This document shows, one piece after another, positions 5,190-61,000 of a stretch of DNA of 64,000 nucleotides (the first letter of the stretch is position 1; every line of letters begins with the position of its first letter). The notes under the pieces were generated by a model. That model had not been told where the DNA came from. It saw nothing but the letters and a program-made list of their open reading frames with translations, and did not search any database. The translations under genes and the position numbers were made by a program. Location of the stretch: sequence record MT939492.1; one strand, given 5' to 3'.

Positions 5190-5200
5190 ACGGCATAAAA

Positions 5201-11022: not shown

Positions 11023-13497
11023 ATGCGAATTGAAAAGGTCGAGCTCGTAGGATATACACGTCTTGCAACGTTGAACAATATCCACGAGTTCATCTACACC
11101 CCGACCTCGGATTACCAGTTGATCCTGGGGACGAATGGGTGCGGTAAGAGTTCGGTGATGCGTGAGTTGTCTCCGCTCCCGCCCAACAAAGAAGACTACG
11201 TCAAGGGTGGTCGTAAGGTCGTCCATCTCACCCATGAAAACAGTACGTTTGTCTTCACCTCCTTGATGACCGGCGGTACTGGTAAGCACAGCGTCCTCAA
11301 AGACGGCGTGGAGCTTAACACCAGCGGACTGGTTACTCTGCAGCGCGAGATCGTCAAACAGCAACTGGGGCTCGATCAGGAGCTTCACGACCTGCTGACC
11401 GACCGTATCCGCTTCAGCCGTATGCGTGCACAGGAACGTCGTCACTGGATGACCCGTCTGTCCACGGCGGACTACGGTTACGTCATGAACAAGTACAAGG
11501 AGTTCGCTTCTCGTGCTCGTGACGCCGAAGGCTCGATCAAAGAGTACGAGCGTCGTGTGGTTCAACAGACTGCTCGACTGCTGGCACTGGAGGACATGGA
11601 TAACCTCGACGTGCGCATTGCTGATCTGACGGCAGAGCTGGTTGAGTTGTTCTCCCAGCGCAAGACTGACCTGCCTCAGCTCAATGCAGTCTGGCATCAG
11701 TACAACCAGACCATCGAACAGATCGAACGCGACGCTAAGGCGCTGCTGAAGATCAACTCGTTCTTCCCGGCCGAGTACAAGTTCACCAGCATCGACCAGA
11801 TGCAGGAACACATCTACAAGCTACAAGCTGACCTCAGTGCTGCGCGTGGTCGTTTCGATGTCTACTCCCGCGACTACGCCGACATGGAGACGGTGATTCG
11901 TGCGCTGGAGGAATCTGGCGCTGACAGCTTGGACAAGCTGCGCGAGATGCAGGGTAAGTTGTCGCGAGAGATCGCTGGCATCGATGAGCAGGTCATCAAC
12001 TTCCCCACTGCGAGTCCGAACAAGAACACGCTGTCTGACTCTCACGACGTCATCAACACCTTCGTAGATATCTTCTCCAATCTACCGGACAACTCCAACC
12101 GCTACTACACCAAGCAGCGCCGCGAGGAAGTCCGTGGGGAACTGACGGAGCTGAAGCGTCAGATCCAAGGTGAGGAGAACAAGGTAGCCTCGGTGGAGCG
12201 TCGCATCGAGATGATCATGTCGGCCAAGGACTCCACCTGCCCCAAGTGTGGCTACGTCTGGAAGGAAGGTGTCAGCGAGAACGAGGTCGAGGGTCTGCTG
12301 GAAACCAAGGCTTCGTTGGAAGCTGGCGTGAAGGTTCTGGAAGGCAAGTGCGTCGACCATGATCGCTATCTGGAAGAGATCGACACGATCGCCTTGCAGT
12401 ACACGCGCTACACCAAGCTGTGTCACGACTACCCGCGTCTGTCGCCGCTCTGGGACTACGTGGCTACCAACAGCTGCATGTCGCACAACCCCAAGATGCA
12501 TTCGGGAATGATCCATACGTGGATCAACGAAGCGACGTTGCTGGTGGAGCGTGCGCAGAAAGCCGAAGACCTCGATCACATCGAAGCTGCTCTGCGTAAG
12601 TCCGATCTCACTGGCGGCGGGGAAGGTGCTCACTACAGCAAGCGTCTGGCTCGACTGGAGCAGGACATTGCTGCGACCTCGGGTGAAATCTCCAAGTTGA
12701 GTGCGGAGATCTCTTCGCTCACCACGGTGAAGTCTCGCATCGATGAACAGCTGGCGCGCTTTGCTGATCTTACCGTCCGTATGGCGCAGGCTTACGAGCA
12801 TGTGCAGAAGCTGGTGGAGATCGAGAAGAACAACAGCATCGAAGGTGTGATCTCTGTCCATCAGACGCAGCTGGCGGCATTGCAGCAGAAGATGACCGAG
12901 AAGATCACTCTGACGGCAATCATCGACGATCTGCGTAAGGCGATGGAAGAGATGGAAGTCCGTCGTCGTGCACTGCGCATCATCGAAGAAGAGCTGTCTC
13001 CGAAGAGTGGATTGATCGCATCGTTGGTGCTGGGTTTCATCAATGCGCTCACAGATCACATGAACTCTGTCATCACTCCCATCTGGGAGTACGACATGAC
13101 TATCCAGTCCTGTTCGATGGCAGAAGGTGATCTGGACTACAAGTTCCCGTTCATGGTGGCTGCGCACAGCAAGGTCATCGCAGACGTGTCGGAAGGGTCG
13201 GATGGGCAGGTGGAGTTGTTCGACTTCGCCTTCAAGCTGACGGCCATGGTTTATCACAACCTCCAGAGCTACCCGCTCTGGCTGGATGAGTTGGGCAAGT
13301 ACTTCGATGAGAAGCATCGGTCCAACTTGATGATGTTCCTGAAGGGCGTAGTGGATGATCGAACGATCACGCAGGTGTTCCTCACCTCTCACTCGGCCAC
13401 TCAGTACATCACCATGAACCAAGCTCAGGCTTGCGTCCTGAACCCTGCCAACATCGTGGTGCCTGACGTCCACAACGAGCATGTTGTAATGCGCTGA
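11023..13497 (+). CDS. sbcC: SbcC/Rad50-like SMC ATPase
   Basis: Walker A GTNGCGKS, long coiled coils, zinc-hook CPKC, signature-like SEGS and Walker B LWLDE. Confidence 0.9.
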   Translation: MRIEKVELVGYTRLATLNNIHEFIYTPTSDYQLILGTNGCGKSSVMRELSPLPPNKEDYVKGGRKVVHLTHENSTFVFTSLMTGGTGKHSVLKDGVELNTSGLVTLQREIVKQQLGLDQELHDLLTDRIRFSRMRAQERRHWMTRLSTADYGYVMNKYKEFASRARDAEGSIKEYERRVVQQTARLLALEDMDNLDVRIADLTAELVELFSQRKTDLPQLNAVWHQYNQTIEQIERDAKALLKINSFFPAEYKFTSIDQMQEHIYKLQADLSAARGRFDVYSRDYADMETVIRALEESGADSLDKLREMQGKLSREIAGIDEQVINFPTASPNKNTLSDSHDVINTFVDIFSNLPDNSNRYYTKQRREEVRGELTELKRQIQGEENKVASVERRIEMIMSAKDSTCPKCGYVWKEGVSENEVEGLLETKASLEAGVKVLEGKCVDHDRYLEEIDTIALQYTRYTKLCHDYPRLSPLWDYVATNSCMSHNPKMHSGMIHTWINEATLLVERAQKAEDLDHIEAALRKSDLTGGGEGAHYSKRLARLEQDIAATSGEISKLSAEISSLTTVKSRIDEQLARFADLTVRMAQAYEHVQKLVEIEKNNSIEGVISVHQTQLAALQQKMTEKITLTAIIDDLRKAMEEMEVRRRALRIIEEELSPKSGLIASLVLGFINALTDHMNSVITPIWEYDMTIQSCSMAEGDLDYKFPFMVAAHSKVIADVSEGSDGQVELFDFAFKLTAMVYHNLQSYPLWLDELGKYFDEKHRSNLMMFLKGVVDDRTITQVFLTSHSATQYITMNQAQACVLNPANIVVPDVHNEHVVMR

Positions 13498-40175: not shown

Positions 40176-40910
40176 ATGGACCTGAAAGCTCTCTTCTTCA
40201 ACAACCGTGACGCGAGTAAGGTCCATGAAGCTCTGAAGGAACTGGACGACGGCCAACTGGTTGCGCTCAAGGACTGCAAGATCTACGTCCCTGAGCGCTA
40301 CACCGAGAAGAGCCTGGCCTTCCTGGGTCAGGAGGTTTTCATTCTCGGTATCTTCGGCATCGTTGTCGAAGGTCAGTGGGCCGGTGTTTCATCTGCGGCG
40401 GCCATCATGCGTATCGAGCCTACCAGCACCGATCGCGTGGACGTCGATGGTGAGCGCTACATGGAGTTCTTCTTCGAGAAGGGCTCCACGGTGGTGGCCA
40501 ATGTCAACCTCGTCAAGACGGACACCTTGGTGTACCTGATCTTCGATGAGTTCCACTCCAAGGGTAACATTCCGTTCTACATGAACCTGGAGGACGTGGC
40601 TCGTGTGTACCAGTCGGCAGGCTATCACGCTGGCTTCGGTATCTGCGACAACCACGTCATCATGGAGATGTTCACCGCAGCCATCGCGCGCAACGCGAAG
40701 GACATGAGCAAGCTGGCTCGCCAGACCTTGACCAGTCGGCTGGAGATCTTCAAGAACCCTCCGGTGTACGTGCCGTTCCGGTCCGTTACCTTCGGCGCCT
40801 CCAACACCCTGTCCAAGTTGATGGGTAACTACTTCGATGAAGGTCTGAACAGCGCGCTGCGAAATCCCAGCACGCGTGCAGAGCGAATCGAACAGATGCT
40901 CTTGACGTAA
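40176..40910 (+). CDS. Conserved virion protein (phiKZ gp176-like, 244 aa)
   Basis: Operonic, immediately before the protease gene; assignment by synteny. Confidence 0.7.
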   Translation: MDLKALFFNNRDASKVHEALKELDDGQLVALKDCKIYVPERYTEKSLAFLGQEVFILGIFGIVVEGQWAGVSSAAAIMRIEPTSTDRVDVDGERYMEFFFEKGSTVVANVNLVKTDTLVYLIFDEFHSKGNIPFYMNLEDVARVYQSAGYHAGFGICDNHVIMEMFTAAIARNAKDMSKLARQTLTSRLEIFKNPPVYVPFRSVTFGASNTLSKLMGNYFDEGLNSALRNPSTRAERIEQMLLT

Positions 40911-40922
40911 AAAGGATCTCCA

Positions 40923-41690
40923 ATGAGCTACATGGGCGCAAAGCCTGTCCAGTCGGCCAAGTACGAATGTACTGCGCTGGTGGGCGTGAACAAGGCTGGT
41001 ACGCTGAAGGCAGATGCACGCGGGTACTACGACAACGTGGTGCTCGGTGCGTTCGACTACCACAACAGCTCCGGTGCTTTCTATCCCTTCGAGGATGCCA
41101 AGCATCTGTTTGAATCTTCCTCGCCGCTGATGCGCAAGATCGCCACCGGCAACCTGCGTGGCGAGTACGGTCATCCGCGCAAGGGTGACATGGACATGCG
41201 GCAGTTCATCAACCGCGTCTGTGACATCTACGAGCCGAACATCTCCCACCACATCGCCAACGTGCGCATCGACAACATCCGCGAGACCAGTGGTCGGCAG
41301 GTGATCGCTGTGCTGGGCCGTGTCAAGCCGGCAGGTCCGATGGGCCCTGCGCTGCGTGAAGCGTTCGAGAACCCCGAAGAAGACGTGTGCTTCTCGGTGC
41401 GTTCGCTGACCGAAGACGGCTGGGTGGGCAACGTTCTCCACAAGCGCATGAAGTCTCTGATCACCTGGGACTTCGTGAATGAGCCGGGCATCAACGTGGC
41501 TCGCAAGTGGAACAACCCGTCGCTGGAATCGTTCGCCATCTCGCCGCAGCAGCTGCGTCTGGCCCGCGATATCCAGAGCCGTGCCAGCAATGGCATGGAG
41601 TCGGCCGCTTGCGGTGTCATGGACCAGATCGCTCGCGACCTGGGCTGGGCCGGCAAGAGCGACCGACCGCCGAGCGCTGACTGGAAGTAA
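40923..41690 (+). CDS. Prohead (head maturation) serine protease (phiKZ gp175-like)
   Basis: GEYGHP (His), FSVRSLT (Ser) and ITWDFVNEPG (Asp) motifs of S80-like prohead proteases; PSLES putative self-cleavage site. Confidence 0.88.
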   Translation: MSYMGAKPVQSAKYECTALVGVNKAGTLKADARGYYDNVVLGAFDYHNSSGAFYPFEDAKHLFESSSPLMRKIATGNLRGEYGHPRKGDMDMRQFINRVCDIYEPNISHHIANVRIDNIRETSGRQVIAVLGRVKPAGPMGPALREAFENPEEDVCFSVRSLTEDGWVGNVLHKRMKSLITWDFVNEPGINVARKWNNPSLESFAISPQQLRLARDIQSRASNGMESAACGVMDQIARDLGWAGKSDRPPSADWK

Positions 41691-41716
41691 TTTCTTACAG
41701 CCAGTAGGCATGATGT

Positions 41717-41746
41717 GGGAGAGTGCTTTCCCCAGCACTCTCTCAT
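41717..41746 (+). terminator. 12-bp hairpin TGGGAGAGTGCT/AGCACTCTCTCA after the protease gene (terminator or processing site)
   Basis: Inverted repeat read directly; no U-tract follows it. Confidence 0.55.
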
Positions 41747-42303
41747 CGGCCGAGCTGACCTAACTGTGTAGGCTTAGACTAGGTGGATCATTGGCTGAGT
41801 AATGCCAGTTGCAATGATTCTTAACAGTACGCGATGGGCAGCATTCCCCATCGAAGTTGTAGACTCAAGAGTCGCCTAGCGACATAGCCGCCGCAACCCC
41901 ATGCGGCCGCACCGTGTCTTGAGAATGCAGCCTTCAGTGATCCCGTAGCCGGTCTGCAGCTGGCCACTTGGATTACTGCTGGGTGCAGTCTTGCATCAAT
42001 TGCCGTATGGTATAGACAGTCGAGCAAAATCTTGGCCCTGTTCTGGTGGGATTGAGAAACCACCCTTGGTCTAGGCTATACCCGGGATCTGGAAAGTCCC
42101 ATATGGGTTAACTAGCTATCTTTCCTGTCGAAAGAAATCCTTGGCCTGAGCAATTCGGTCATCGATAGTTGAGCCTTGAGCTCAGCCTACAGCCGTCCAC
42201 ATTTGGCGACGGTTGTGGGAAGCGCTTATCGCTTCAAGCGTTCTGGCCCCCTGGGACGCAAACAACACGAAAACTAACAGGGCTAATGTCCTGAATTGCC
42301 TAG
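41746..42303 (+). ncRNA. Candidate large structured non-coding RNA (~560 nt)
   Basis: No plausible ORF. At least 8 local hairpins and several 7-10 bp long-range helices found by eye; G-U pairs occur on the + strand; bounded by hairpins on both sides. Boundaries are approximate. Confidence 0.6.
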
Positions 42304-42304
42304 C

Positions 42305-42362
42305 GGCATAAAAGCAGGTTGAGGGCCACGGTTGCGACCGTGCGACCCTCAGCCTTTATGCC
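42305..42362 (+). terminator. Long compound hairpin GGCATAAA..AGGTTGAGGG..CACGGT-TGCG-ACCGTG..CCCTCAGCCT-TTATGCC
   Basis: Nested inverted repeats with the same GGCATA/TATGCC flanks as other gene-end hairpins. Confidence 0.65.
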
Positions 42363-42461
42363 CTTATGCAAAGTCGATACAAACTTGTTTCACTTACACA
42401 CTACCGTAGTAGTACTACTCGCTAGGAAACTGCCGGCATTTCGTAATTCGATTCAAAACGG

Positions 42462-42478
42462 TTTGAAGCATATATCAT
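42462..42478 (+). promoter_or_regulatory. Putative early (virion RNAP) promoter TTTGAA-N3-TATATCAT
   Basis: Same spacing as the copies at 52253 and 58606; resembles the phiKZ early promoter consensus TATATTAC. Confidence 0.55.
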
Positions 42479-42591
42479 CCAATTGACCTACCAACGCAGT
42501 AACATCTCATCCCTAAAAAAGTACATCGCAGTGCTACACTGTGAAGTGCCCTGCTGGGTAGTTCGTCCCTAAACCAACTGGAAAAAGCACC

Positions 42592-43074
42592 ATGTCCGAA
42601 GTCAAGACCACCTTCGAAGGCGACGCCAAGGTTCGTGAGCACGCCGACCGCATCCGCAAGGAGCTGTCCTACAACTCCCACGGCAACGCTCCCGAAGACC
42701 TGGGCGAAGTCATCTGCAAGCCGATCTTCGAAGAGCACGGCATCACCCCGCAGATCCTGAAGAACCTGAAGACCGCCACCGCGCTCGCCGTCGCCTCCGC
42801 CGGCCTGGCCCACGGCGAAAGCTCCAACCAGGTGCTGAACGACAACCAGGGCATCGACCGCACGACCCTGTCCTTCAACATCGGCGAAGACCGCGTCACC
42901 CACACCTACCTGCGCCGCCGCGAATCCAACGATCCGCAGAACAAGGGCAAGACCATCGTCAAGAAGGGCGCGCTGTCGACCAACTACACCACCCGTGCCG
43001 GCGACGGCAGCCGTGGCAGCCTGAAGGCCGTCAAGCGCCACCTGGTCGCCCTGGGCGAAGAAGTCCTGAAGTAA
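42592..43074 (+). CDS. Hypothetical protein (160 aa), probably highly expressed
   Basis: Extreme C-ending codon bias; behind the early-promoter motif. Confidence 0.8.
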   Translation: MSEVKTTFEGDAKVREHADRIRKELSYNSHGNAPEDLGEVICKPIFEEHGITPQILKNLKTATALAVASAGLAHGESSNQVLNDNQGIDRTTLSFNIGEDRVTHTYLRRRESNDPQNKGKTIVKKGALSTNYTTRAGDGSRGSLKAVKRHLVALGEEVLK

Positions 43075-43107
43075 TCTGCTGCCGGCCTGCGCCGTGGCAC
43101 CGGACTG

Positions 43108-43140
43108 GGGGAGCGCTGCTCCCCTGGTCTGCTATGCCGA
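43108..43140 (+). terminator. Hairpin GACTGGGGGAGC-GCT-GCTCCCCTGGTC followed by CTATGCC
   Basis: Inverted repeat after the 42592 gene. Confidence 0.55.
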
Positions 43141-43168
43141 ACACAACAAGTGAACAAGGGGAAGTACC

Positions 43169-43795
43169 ATGCTGAAAGAACGTGCGGAGTTTATCCAGAG
43201 ACCTGCAGTTATCGAAAAGGTCCAGAAGCTCCGTGACTACGCATACACGGACAAAGAGATCGTCGACGAGCTGAGTAAGAAATACTCGGCTATCCTCAAC
43301 CCTCTGGGCGGCGTGTTCAATCGCGTCGACCTGTACCACATCAAGACCGATTTCAAAGACCTCAAGATCGACCAGCCTGTTACTGAGGCCGAGAAGGCCA
43401 AGGCTAAAACGGAGAAGTACCTGAGTGAGACCTGCTACCTGATTCTGGGTAGCGATACCACTGAAGCTTTCGATACGGCCGCCACCGTAGTGATCGACCC
43501 CTTCGGTCACATCAAGGCGAACCTGGTCATGTTCAAGTCGGTGATGGCTGTGGCTGTGGCCACCTTCGATGATCGTACCATCGAAGACATCGTCGAATCC
43601 ATGACCAACCTGCTGACCATCTACAACAAGTGGGCGCAGGGTCGTTCCGATGACATCCAGCAAATGCATGAACTGACCAACGGCTTCCGTGCCGTTTATC
43701 GTCGGATCATCACTGGACATCCGTCACCGGCCAGCATCCAGATCTTCTGGGACCGCCACTTCGGACGTGGTGAACCGGAAGAGACTGAAGAGTAA
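43169..43795 (+). CDS. Hypothetical protein (208 aa)
   Basis: AAGGGG RBS and phage codon usage. Confidence 0.7.
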   Translation: MLKERAEFIQRPAVIEKVQKLRDYAYTDKEIVDELSKKYSAILNPLGGVFNRVDLYHIKTDFKDLKIDQPVTEAEKAKAKTEKYLSETCYLILGSDTTEAFDTAATVVIDPFGHIKANLVMFKSVMAVAVATFDDRTIEDIVESMTNLLTIYNKWAQGRSDDIQQMHELTNGFRAVYRRIITGHPSPASIQIFWDRHFGRGEPEETEE

Positions 43796-52191: not shown

Positions 52192-52200
52192 CTTGGGCTG

Positions 52201-52239
52201 GACATATCGGGAGGGGCTTCGGCCCCTCCCCTTATGCCG
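52201..52239 (+). terminator. CATA-GGGAGGGGC-TTCG-GCCCCTCCC-TTATGCC hairpin
   Basis: Follows the tube gene; belongs to the hairpin family. Confidence 0.75.
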
Positions 52240-52252
52240 TGATTCCAATTTC

Positions 52253-52269
52253 TTTCAACCATACATCAC
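52253..52269 (+). promoter_or_regulatory. Putative early promoter TTTCAA-N3-TACATCAC
   Basis: Same architecture as the motifs at 42462 and 58606; precedes the membrane-protein island. Confidence 0.5.
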
Positions 52270-52307
52270 CTTACTGCAATACCTTCCGCAAAACCACCCA
52301 ACGGAGC

Positions 52308-52658
52308 ATCATGAACATCTTCACCATTATTCTTATCGCCTTCGCAGCTGTTGCGTTGGCTTTCAACGTATCTGCGCTGTACGCGTGGATGCAACACTTC
52401 AACGCTAGCCGAGGACATGACAACTATCATTTCGACTACACCGGGGGAGCTTACCGTTTGGGGGAACAAGAACTGGTACTGATGGAAATTGGCGCTTTCG
52501 TCATTGCCGCAATAGCTACACTTTTGGCTGTACTTTCGATCTACATGCACTACATTCTCGTAGTCAACTTTGCAGTCGCTACGGTAACTGCTTTGGTCTA
52601 CGCAAGGGGCATCCGTCACCAACGCCTCTACCCCATTACCCATCGTTTCCACTTGTAG
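52308..52658 (+). CDS. Small multi-pass membrane protein
   Basis: Track ORF 52239..52658; the likely start is near MNIFTIIL (GGAG upstream, ~52308-52311). Three hydrophobic segments; lower GC than the core genes. Confidence 0.65.
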   Translation: MMNIFTIILIAFAAVALAFNVSALYAWMQHFNASRGHDNYHFDYTGGAYRLGEQELVLMEIGAFVIAAIATLLAVLSIYMHYILVVNFAVATVTALVYARGIRHQRLYPITHRFHL

Positions 52659-52670
52659 GAGATAGCCGCT

Positions 52671-60318: not shown

Positions 60319-60337
60319 CTGTACTACCGCGTGCTTC

Positions 60338-60377
60338 CACTGGGGAGGAGGGGACTTCGGTCCTCTCCTTCCTGGTG
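60338..60377 (+). terminator. GGAGGAGGGAC-TTCG-GTCCTCTCCTTCC hairpin
   Basis: UUCG-capped stem after the 59068 gene; coordinates approximate. Confidence 0.65.
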
Positions 60378-60609
60378 GTTTTATGTCTGTAGTAAAAAAT
60401 TACTCCACACCCCTTTTATCTGAATGGAACTTTCCTCTCGGGGGAAACCATTTAAAGGAAGGGGGTATGTGCAGAAACTTTAGGGAGGGGGTAGAGGAGG
60501 CGTAGCGTAGCTACTAGCCTCCGGGAATGTCTTCTATGCCCTGTACAAGCCTTAGGCGCCCACCTTGGAGTATAAACTGACTTAGGAAGGGGATAGTACG
60601 ATCCTATCA

Positions 60610-60960
60610 GTGGATGCTCATGAGTACCTAGTCGTGTCTAGTAAAGCAAACCAATTCAGTCAGTTGAAACCAGCTGCACTGAAGAAGAACCTCAAGTTAC
60701 CCTACTTCAACAATCAGCGTGGGGATGACGCTGACTACACCACCGGTATGAAAGCCTATCGACTGGCTGACCGCAAGCTATACCAACTTTTGAAACAATC
60801 ACCTGAGCACAGTGACGTACGGCGATATTTGAACCATGCCTACGAACGACTGCTCGACTGTATGCCCCAGCCCAGTACAGCCCGCAGAGCTACCAGCCTG
60901 CAGGACTACCTGACTCAGCTGGAGGCTTTGATTGAAGTCTGTGAGGCAGCTGCCAGCTAA
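60610..60960 (+). CDS. Hypothetical protein (116 aa, GTG start)
   Basis: Open frame with atypical codon usage. Confidence 0.5.
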   Translation: MDAHEYLVVSSKANQFSQLKPAALKKNLKLPYFNNQRGDDADYTTGMKAYRLADRKLYQLLKQSPEHSDVRRYLNHAYERLLDCMPQPSTARRATSLQDYLTQLEALIEVCEAAAS

Positions 60961-61000
60961 TCCTGTGTAGCTTACTCACTCACCTAGTTTGGAGTCTTCC

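Follow-up and report, generated by a model that had tools for sequence, protein, structure and literature searches.

GOLLD and ROOL are phage RNAs that are often encoded near tRNA islands and that form RNA-only cages through kissing loops and A-minor contacts, and phage T4 encodes rnaC and rnaD (species 1 and 2 RNAs), stable non-tRNA RNAs of its tRNA cluster that are released from a tRNA precursor. To our knowledge, large and highly structured RNAs are rare in bacteria and phages, and each one known to us so far (RNase P, the group I and II introns, OLE, GOLLD and ROOL) is a ribozyme or an unusual RNA machine. The RNA described here was found in a stretch of 64,000 nucleotides (nt), referred to as the window, which comprises bases 124001–188000 of Xanthomonas phage Xoo-sp14 (MT939492.1, 232,104 bp), a phiKZ-like jumbo phage of X. 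oryzae pv. oryzae. In window numbering, which together with the + strand is used for its features throughout, positions 41700–42364, behind the gene for the prohead protease, encode a noncoding RNA of about 650 nt, the secondary structure of which is under selection. It belongs to a known kind, that of the large structured phage RNAs of unknown function, within which it constitutes a new class that is absent from Rfam 15.

Evidence for a Structured RNA Read from the + Strand

Relatives of the locus were collected by protease-guided searches of IMG/VR, JGI metagenomes and a 5.8-billion-protein collection, and three groups of phages, here called X, Y and Z, were found to carry a long noncoding stretch directly after the protease gene. 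Group X comprises five lineages (Xoo-sp14 with near-identical contigs, L100, L004/L082, L106 and L005), the proteases of which are 93–99% identical to that of Xoo-sp14, and groups Y (L093–L097 and L018) and Z (L013) follow at protease identities of 60 and 63%. The consensus structure obtained with RNAalifold on the five X lineages has 202 predicted pairs, with 95.6% of the cells paired. Double changes are seen in 31 of these pairs; column shuffles give 14.9 ± 2.4, none of the 500 attaining 31, and a slid control, in which the partners were moved by 1–3 columns, gives 2–6. The covariation score is 0.186 versus 0.103. Compensatory changes in homologues, on which an earlier note on this DNA had made its proposal of a large structured RNA depend, are thus present; group Y on its own contributes 21 compensated pairs (L093 versus L018).

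The free energy of folding points in the same direction. On the + strand the stretch singled out in the earlier note, 41746–42303, folds at −219.4 kcal/mol against −183.4 ± 7.1 in dinucleotide shuffles (z −5.05; 0 of 100 as good), as had been foreseen, whereas the minus strand reaches a z of only −1.39; the RNA of group Z, taken on its own, has a z of −5.15. The wobble pairs, which had been proposed to be G·U on the + strand, are indeed of that kind, with 124 G·U against 6 A·C cells in the X structure, and when the same structure is read from the other strand pairing falls to 83.8%. This excess of G·U cells indicates that the working molecule is the + strand RNA, and argues against an element that acts as DNA. 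A conserved open reading frame (ORF) was sought across X, Y and Z and none was found, the best matches within X jumping between reading frames, so that compensation beyond the controls, strand-specific G·U pairing and the lack of a conserved ORF are here found together. The large structured RNA of the + strand was therefore correctly recognized, as were the hairpins that bracket it (41715–41746 and 42302–42364). Its boundaries had been drawn too narrowly, at 41746 and 42303: the structured stretch itself is confirmed, and the conserved structure is wider, from about 41700 to 42364.

With regard to classification, Rfam 15 gave no match at gathering thresholds over the whole window, and for 41600–42700 at E ≤ 10 it gave two chance miRNA-like hits and nothing else. 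For groups Y and Z and for the more distant members described below (L110–L112, ZC03 and ZC08), permissive thresholds returned no family besides tRNA, a sub-threshold hammerhead and chance miRNA-like hits. Between the two options that had been left side by side, a divergent ROOL or GOLLD and a new class, the new class is borne out and membership in ROOL or GOLLD is not, neither model of Rfam 15 being matched at the gathering threshold or at E ≤ 10. Literature searches yielded no description of this RNA family, and the Xoo-sp14 genome announcement does not report RNA genes. ARAGORN predicts neither a tRNA nor a transfer-messenger RNA in the window, and the Xoo-sp14 genome is likewise without tRNA genes.

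Architecture of the Two Modules

The Xoo-sp14 RNA consists of two tandem paralogous modules (Table 1), and the single undivided fold that had been assumed for it does not hold, since it is a tandem duplication, the modules of which are predicted to form separate transcription units in groups Y and Z. In the 5' part of the shared module plan a helix closes a variable multi-hairpin domain and is followed by one hairpin; in the 3' part an (A)AGUUG strand pairs with an invariant CAGC (helix P_a), directly followed by the long hairpin P_b and then by P_c, a hairpin of the GAAG type. In both modules these three helices abut with no unpaired nucleotide between them, the junctions falling within near-invariant sequences between CAGC and C and between GG and GAAG. 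In an alignment of 14 copies of this motif, taken from both modules of X, Y and Z, pairing stands at 93.7% and double changes are found in 39 cells, where shuffles give 14 ± 3.2; of the 11 pairs of P_b, 8 are changed on both sides. The covariance model built on the shared motif, R1, finds both copies in X, Y and Z at 48–71 bits, and no further copies in the window, in the other 168 kb of Xoo-sp14 or in about 60 other phiKZ-like protease neighborhoods, the distant jumbo phages having been searched around their protease genes.

In module 1 the closing helix P1 covaries, being AUCGC/GCGGU in L005 and ACUCG/CGAGU in the more distant L110, and an inner hairpin beneath it has 2 covarying pairs. The hairpin at 41832–41853 is replaced by CGGAACG/CGUUCCG in L004, CGGAAUG/CAUUCCG in L106 and GGAUC/GAUC in L005. 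The P_a strand GAAGUUGUAG pairs with GAAUGCAGC across a three-way insert, the hairpins of which covary, and the base of this helix, GUUG/CAGC, is invariant in all family members. In module 2 the helix that closes the core is invariant in X and is found as GGCAG/CUGCC at the same place in Y, the inner hairpins covary, and the P_a strand GAUAGUUGAGC pairs with GCUCAGC. Most of the local stems that had been picked out by eye recur in the consensus: ATCATTG/CAATGAT, CGATGGG/CCCATCG, CTCAAGA/TCTTGAG with its two inner hairpins, GCCGG/CTGGC, GGTGG/CCACC, TGAGC/GCTCA and the 12-bp CCTACAGCCGTC/GACGGTTGTGGG, the majority of these with compensation. Within the module 2 core, the loop GGAAAGUCC (42091–42099) is conserved in X, and the exact string is missing from Y and Z. 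It equals what we take to be the universally conserved CR-I stretch of RNase P RNA, which is probably a coincidence, Rfam giving no similarity to RNase P.

The long-range pairings fared differently, and three of the four helices that had been proposed are not supported. In two lineages GATCCCG/CGGGATC has lost 4 of its 7 pairs, with no compensation. A hairpin that is supported by covariation competes with TGTAGGCT/AGCCTACA, which is also broken in two lineages and uncompensated, and TAGCTATC/GATAGTTG likewise loses pairs with no compensation. The helix TGGCCCTGTT/AACAGGGCTA is largely pairable; it starts at 42033 instead of 42023, shows one-sided changes only and is mismatched in L005, and its first four pairs compete with a covarying local helix (C-G to U-A, columns 362/395). 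Similarly, GCAATTCGG/CTGAATTGC can largely form, with one-sided changes only and mismatches in L005, and both of these helices use the invariant 3' tail. The pseudoknot that had been deduced from their crossing is thus a candidate only, no covariation standing behind the crossing pair. Another long-range helix, P0, would, if real, enclose both modules; it has moderate support from two pairs with double and three with one-sided changes among Xoo-sp14, L100, L004 and L106.

Between the protease stop codon and module 1 lies a hairpin (41715–41746) that has neither a U-tract nor TTATGCC and that is preceded by a conserved AUGAUGUGG box. This box, (G)CAUGAUGUGG or CAAUGAUGUGG, is found directly 3' of the protease stop in X and Y (window 41708–41718; L093 4800–4810), with a second copy after unit 1 in Y (L093 5080–5090) and a related AAUGAUAGUGUG in Z (L013 5240–5252). 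It resembles a C-box (RUGAUGA), and processing, protein binding or a promoter are candidate roles for it. A hammerhead ribozyme was sought by eye after the protease stop in the window and is absent, the AUGAUGUGG box having no GAAA partner.

Table 1. Features of the Xoo-sp14 RNA and of the following leader (window numbering; X, Y and Z, groups of relatives; R1, covariance model of the shared motif)
Feature	Position	Strand	Remarks
Whole conserved region: two modules, 3' tail, terminator	41700–42364	+	X consensus
Candidate helix P0, 5' strand GCCAGUAGGC	41700–41709	+	would pair with 42240–42247
Hairpin right after protease stop, 13 bp	41715–41746	+	conserved in X; positional equivalents in Y and Z
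Module 1	41763–41997	+	P1, two inner hairpins, hairpin 41832–41853, P_a, P_b, P_c
Module 1 P1 (ACUGU/ACAGU)	41763–41828	+	encloses hairpins 41772–41784 and 41785–41820
Hairpin CGAUGGG/CCCAUCG	41832–41853	+	stem wholly replaced, pairing kept
Module 1 P_a GUUGUAGACUC/GAGAAUGCAGC	41856–41931	+	encloses three-way insert with two hairpins
Module 1 P_b, long hairpin	41932–41981	+	begins at second C of CAGCC; apex CUGCAG; R1 57.6 bits
Module 1 P_c (GGUGCA/UGCAUC)	41982–41997	+	abuts P_b
Linker hairpin UGCC-GUAU-GGUA	42001–42012	+	module junction; C-G to A-U in L004 and L106
Module 2	42015–42235	+	GACAG/CUGUC closing two hairpins, hairpin d, P_a, P_b, P_c
Module 2 core, GACAG..GAG/CUU..CUGUC junction	42015–42129	+	encloses hairpins 42034–42071 and 42074–42117; invariant blocks
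Hairpin d, loop UGAGCAAUUC	42136–42167	+	3 pairs with changes on both sides
Module 2 P_a (GUUGAGC/GCUCAGC)	42168–42186	+	2 compensated pairs
Module 2 P_b CUACAGCCGUC/GACGGUUGUGG	42187–42218	+	3 compensated pairs in X; R1 66.1 bits
Module 2 P_c (GAAGCG/CGCUUC)	42219–42235	+	invariant in X; covaries over 14 motif copies
Candidate helix P0, 3' strand GUUCUGGC	42240–42247	+	would pair with 41700–41709
3' tail	42248–42301	+	last ~35 nt invariant in all X lineages; hairpin 42278–42293
Long GC-rich terminator hairpin, then UUUAUGCCC	42302–42364	+	95–100% identical among lineages; one compensated pair
Xoosp14_179 leader, in gap and outside RNA	42365–42591	+	227 nt; 85–95% identical among X lineages

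Related Modules in Other Phages

In relatives of Xoo-sp14 with protease identities of 56% or less (LucasX, RTH11, L014, L006 and about 55 more IMG/VR contigs) protein genes are found in place of the RNA. In LucasX (L007 5751–8944), RTH11 (L008) and L014 (6814–10186) they take up the space that separates the protease gene from the Xoosp14_179 homologue, and an AAA/BCS1-like ATPase is among them; the RNA locus is thus a replacement or an insertion that is specific to one clade, at a spot that varies. A metagenome scan with a protease profile added only one further X-type contig and some distant relatives.

The module family is, at the same time, common to unrelated phages. A degenerate pattern of the motif led to three more IMG/VR contigs, on which R1 scores 41.5 bits (L110 and L111) and 34.7 bits (L112); the same pattern gave 95 matches in 185,579 species genomes, which is about chance level, and none of them is convincing with R1. 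L110 and L111 encode T4-type topoisomerase II subunits and share AAGUUGUAA...GCAGCC. These contigs contain a whole single module, in which ACUCG...CGAGU (compensating P1) is followed by a hairpin, CAAGUUGUAA...GCGCAGCC, P_b, GGGAAG and P_c, and directly 3' of which lie genes for tRNA-Thr, Met, Gly, Ser and Val. This module is preceded by a putative hammerhead with a complete core, the minimum-free-energy fold giving exactly its three stems in a type-I shape.

It is through this hammerhead, and not through the motif, that the next members were reached. When 50,697 phage records were searched by BLAST with the RNAs of Y, Z and L110, the only match was to the hammerhead core in ZC03 and ZC08, two N4-like Pseudomonas phages of the Schitoviridae. 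In both, an unannotated gap of 326 nt between tRNA-Met and tRNA-Asn holds a hammerhead with the cleavage triplet GUC, the stems of which covary with those of L110 and between ZC03 and ZC08. Behind the hammerhead lies a module that contains AAGUUGUUC...GAGCAGCC and a P_b of 11 bp, and on which R1 scores 32.5 bits in ZC03 (E 2.7e-7). The hammerhead is absent from the jumbo-phage members.

The putative type-I hammerheads (L110 2614–2690; ZC03, KU356690.1, L216 ~603–665; ZC08, L217 ~73–135) lie just 3' of a tRNA or tRNA fragment and 5' of the module and are unannotated in GenBank. They have a CUGAUGA/GAAA core and three stems, I and III of which covary, and reach about 21–22 bits in Rfam against a gathering threshold of 48.5. 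The tRNA fragment of L110 (2560–2610) consists of the T arm, the acceptor strand and CCA, and the 5' half of the tRNA is missing; it overlaps an HNH-endonuclease-like ORF at the end of the latter, shortly before the hammerhead, and may be what is left of a tRNA gene or a duplication that resembles an attachment site. L112, an unclassified viral contig of 40 kb that encodes a tail-fibre protein, has a probable module on the minus strand of the locus (11757–12060), with AAUUGUAAAC...GUACAGCC, a long P_b, then GGGGGAAG, and UUUUAUG after it.

Gene Setting and Transcription Signals

The RNA locus lies between Xoosp14_178 and Xoosp14_179. Xoosp14_178 (40923–41690) encodes the prohead or head maturation protease (phrog_3014, Pfam Peptidase_S80), which is full length when compared with its homologues. 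On the same strand and 5' of it are an RNA polymerase beta-like gene, a small ORF, a phrog_3841 protein and a virion structural protein, in agreement with the placement of the RNA at the end of a late operon, that is of a virion RNA polymerase, phrog_3841, virion-protein and protease block. Xoosp14_179 (42592–43074), on the same strand as the RNA, has no assigned function, is intact and full length, and is kept beside the RNA in groups X, Y and Z. Positions 41691–42591 hold no annotated gene and form, with 901 nt, the biggest annotated intergenic gap of the window and of the whole 232-kb record; the description of the locus as the largest gene-free stretch, with a lower GC content, is accurate, the values being 0.50–0.55 in the gap and 0.58–0.66 in the adjoining coding DNA. 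No sigma-70 promoter and no canonical terminator were found in 40800–43200, and no iterons, AT-rich unwinding blocks or skew inflection in the gap.

The late promoter of phiKZ is TATG, with the G as +1 (PMC4666361). A GC-rich hairpin with TTATGCC directly behind it marks the ends of genes 150, 169, 185 and 198 and also follows the RNA, at 5192(−), 21637(+), 42356(+), 52232(+) and 62571(−) of the window. With the promoter rule taken over from phiKZ, this combination may be read as a terminator-plus-restart punctuation of Xoo-sp14. In groups Y and Z each module is followed by a GC hairpin of its own plus UUUUAUGCC or UCUAUGC, which separate the units, so that module 2 would be a separate RNA there and the terminator between the modules would have been lost in X. 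In none of the three groups is module 1 separated from the protease stop by a TATG or a terminator-type signal, and it is therefore most simply understood as read-through from the late operon. Transcription of the Xoo-sp14 RNA is likewise predicted from such signals: it would be made late, by read-through from the protease operon, and its 3' end would be set by the intrinsic terminator at 42302–42364, a type of terminator that recurs elsewhere in the genome. The possibility that a TATG at 42005, where the modules meet, serves as an internal promoter was considered and dismissed, since this TATGG sits in a covarying hairpin and the G is lost (TATTG) in L004 and L106.

The leader of gene 179 that follows the terminator is conserved above the level of synonymous sites (83–84%) and is not unusually stable as RNA (z −0.90). 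It carries a box, GTAGTACTACTCG, which is part of a near-palindrome and is common to X, Y and Z, and a small covarying hairpin, UUCAAAACGGUUUGAA in X and UUUAAAACGGUUUAAA in Z; it may be a promoter, an operator or a translational control element.

Two other gaps of the window were looked at. The second-largest annotated one, 60319–61000 (682 nt; fold z −4.66), opens with a perfect 19-bp hairpin followed by UUUUAUG and also contains TATGCCC; its ORF at 60610–60960 (+, 116 aa) may at most be a probable unannotated gene, and its first ~290 nt could be a further structured element. The gap at 52192–52670 (479 nt), after a gene annotated as major virion structural protein, holds an ORF (52239–52658, +) with an internal start MNIFTIILIAFAAVALAF... 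and two hydrophobic stretches, which probably encodes a small membrane protein that the annotation lacks; as RNA, this gap does not fold better than shuffles (z −0.06).

Function and Alternative Explanations

The explanation that we favor, and regard as probable, is that of a selected two-module RNA that is made late and acts in trans as a stable particle, possibly as a scaffold or oligomer. In this model the RNA would be a compactly folded particle and would not serve as a cis-regulatory element. Action in trans is suggested by module 2, which in Y and Z has a putative TATG start and terminator of its own, and by the single modules of ZC03/ZC08 and L110, which are bracketed by putative ribozyme and tRNA-processing sites. 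These single modules would be released from tRNA precursors, the hammerhead cutting at the 5' end and RNase P presumably at the 3' end. The fact that the modules are fused in Xoo-sp14 and split elsewhere suggests that the two cooperate. The most speculative step is that the RNA would be a scaffold or oligomer in the manner of GOLLD and ROOL, a mechanism that we hold to be conceivable and rather improbable. A candidate contact for it is offered by P_b of module 1, the apex of which is self-complementary and reads CUGCAG in X, UCGCGA in Y, GGUACC in Z and UCCGGA in ZC03.

It has to be noted that several observations weigh against this explanation. The argument from the apex is weak, since hairpin symmetry accounts for part of the palindromes and three lineages are without one: L005 and L112 have no apex palindrome, and L110 has only GUAC. 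The putative closing helix P0 is broken in L005. The family is small, with about nine lineages over all the collections searched, and its 5' end and its stability as RNA are, for every member, predictions from sequence. As Xoo-sp14 has no tRNA genes, the context of a tRNA island does not apply to the window itself. In addition, the mean identity of the RNA (82.5% between Xoo-sp14 and L004, 71.7% between Xoo-sp14 and L005) is no higher than that of the third codon or synonymous positions of the protease (83–84%), so that selection is visible as compensation and invariant blocks and not as overall conservation.

A first alternative is that the RNA acts in cis, as a long and highly structured 3' untranslated region of the protease operon, which would shield the late mRNA from 3' exonucleases and set the end of the transcript, and which would have no function in trans. 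The RNA does follow the protease stop directly, with no recognizable promoter, and the hairpin at 41715–41746 lacks terminator features while a strong terminator stands at 42302–42364. We nevertheless consider this unlikely, given that 650 nt, invariant unpaired blocks and a duplicated specific motif exceed what the stabilization of an mRNA needs, that in Y and Z module 2 stands apart as a unit, with a putative TATG start and terminator to itself, and that homologous modules occur in tRNA clusters with no upstream mRNA. A role as the upstream leader of Xoosp14_179, riboswitch-like or as an attenuator, would fit with the RNA being upstream on the same strand and with gene 179 being kept beside it in X, Y and Z. 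A conserved strong terminator and a TATG start stand, however, between the RNA and the 227-nt leader proper, relatives keep the homologue of gene 179 and have no RNA, and the single modules elsewhere precede tRNAs and not gene 179, which leaves this idea with hardly any probability. Also extremely improbable is an element that acts as DNA (a replication origin, a packaging site or a recombination hotspot) with incidental hairpins: the locus is the largest noncoding stretch of the genome, of lower GC content and rich in inverted repeats, but the pairing is strand-specific, both by wobble cells (124 G·U versus 6 A·C) and by the pairing itself (95.6 versus 83.8% on the mirror strand), the fold z is −5.05 on the + strand and −1.39 on the minus strand, the gap has no iterons, AT-rich unwinding blocks or skew inflection, and homologues lie inside tRNA transcription units.

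Two further alternatives concern the kind of RNA. Invariant unpaired nucleotides at the helix junctions (around CAGC and C, GG and GAAG, and AGUUG), the association with a hammerhead in other phages and a size typical of large ribozymes could speak for a catalytic RNA, either a new ribozyme that cleaves or processes itself or a self-splicing intron that has degenerated. Against it stand the lack of Rfam matches to group I and II introns, RNase P and small ribozymes even at E ≤ 10, the fact that no gene is interrupted, with the protease and gene 179 both intact and full length, and the hammerhead being a separate element that the jumbo-phage members do not have; we think it very unlikely. A divergent member of ROOL or GOLLD would have a similar size, phage origin and relatives beside tRNA genes, but their Rfam 15 models do not match X, Y, Z, L110 or ZC03 even at E ≤ 1–10 and the modular architecture is unlike their descriptions, so that we give this assignment almost no credence. 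A sponge for CsrA/RsmA was also tried and rejected, the GGA counts being at the dinucleotide-shuffle expectation in X, Y and Z and AGGA occurring 0–2 times.

Returning to the trans-acting two-module RNA, its boldest form is one that we would call conceivable and, on balance, doubtful. It would be a new modular class in phiKZ-like, N4-like and topoisomerase-II-encoding phages, with Xoo-sp14 as its founding and only cultured jumbo-phage member and with single modules excised by the hammerhead and RNase P, in which the two modules, whether split or fused, would join by RNA–RNA contacts to form a defined higher-order particle or would perform a new catalysis on tRNA or translation late in infection. 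The role in head assembly or packaging that had been raised for the RNA is suggested only by its gene neighborhood, and elsewhere the same module is found in tRNA clusters.

Significance and Comparison with Known RNAs

The family ties the late operons of jumbo phages to the tRNA-island RNAs of other phages. It has cultured representatives in Xoo-sp14 (Xanthomonas oryzae) and ZC03/ZC08 (Pseudomonas aeruginosa), its single-module form of about 260–360 nt is suited to structural work, and the natural comparison of split and fused modules points to an interaction between them. The old question of what such RNAs do thereby becomes directly testable, by deletion and by in vitro assembly.

Among known phage RNAs, the precedent for the head-assembly idea is the pRNA of phi29, a structured RNA of ~170 nt that forms an oligomer by loop-loop pairing. 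It differs from the present RNA in its fold and in belonging to small podophages, Rfam detects no homology between the two, and only the neighboring protease gene links the Xoo-sp14 RNA to proheads. The noncoding transcripts of phiKZ-like jumbo phages are, like the Xoo-sp14 RNA, delimited by phage terminators; they are, however, 70–250 nt long, are defined by transcript ends and not by covariation, and stem from other loci, none having been reported after the protease gene. The modules of ZC03 and L110 share with rnaC and rnaD of T4 that they are co-encoded with phage tRNAs, whereas the T4 RNAs are much shorter (119–139 nt), and R1 run with filters off on T4 70.6–72.7 kb gives no match at E ≤ 1.

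The closest comparison remains that with GOLLD and ROOL. The present family differs from both in that it does not match either Rfam model, in that a module of ~250–350 nt with a GUUG/CAGC three-helix stack, present once or twice, makes up the RNA, and in that the RNA of the jumbo phages follows the prohead protease in genomes devoid of tRNAs. In common with them it has a length of several hundred nucleotides, many covarying helices, no coding capacity, a phage origin and an unknown function, and the modules of ZC03/ZC08 and L110 are located in tRNA islands, with that of L111 also beside tRNA genes. It may share with them, finally, a self-complementary loop for RNA–RNA contacts, the multimers being known for GOLLD and ROOL and here suggested by sequence only.

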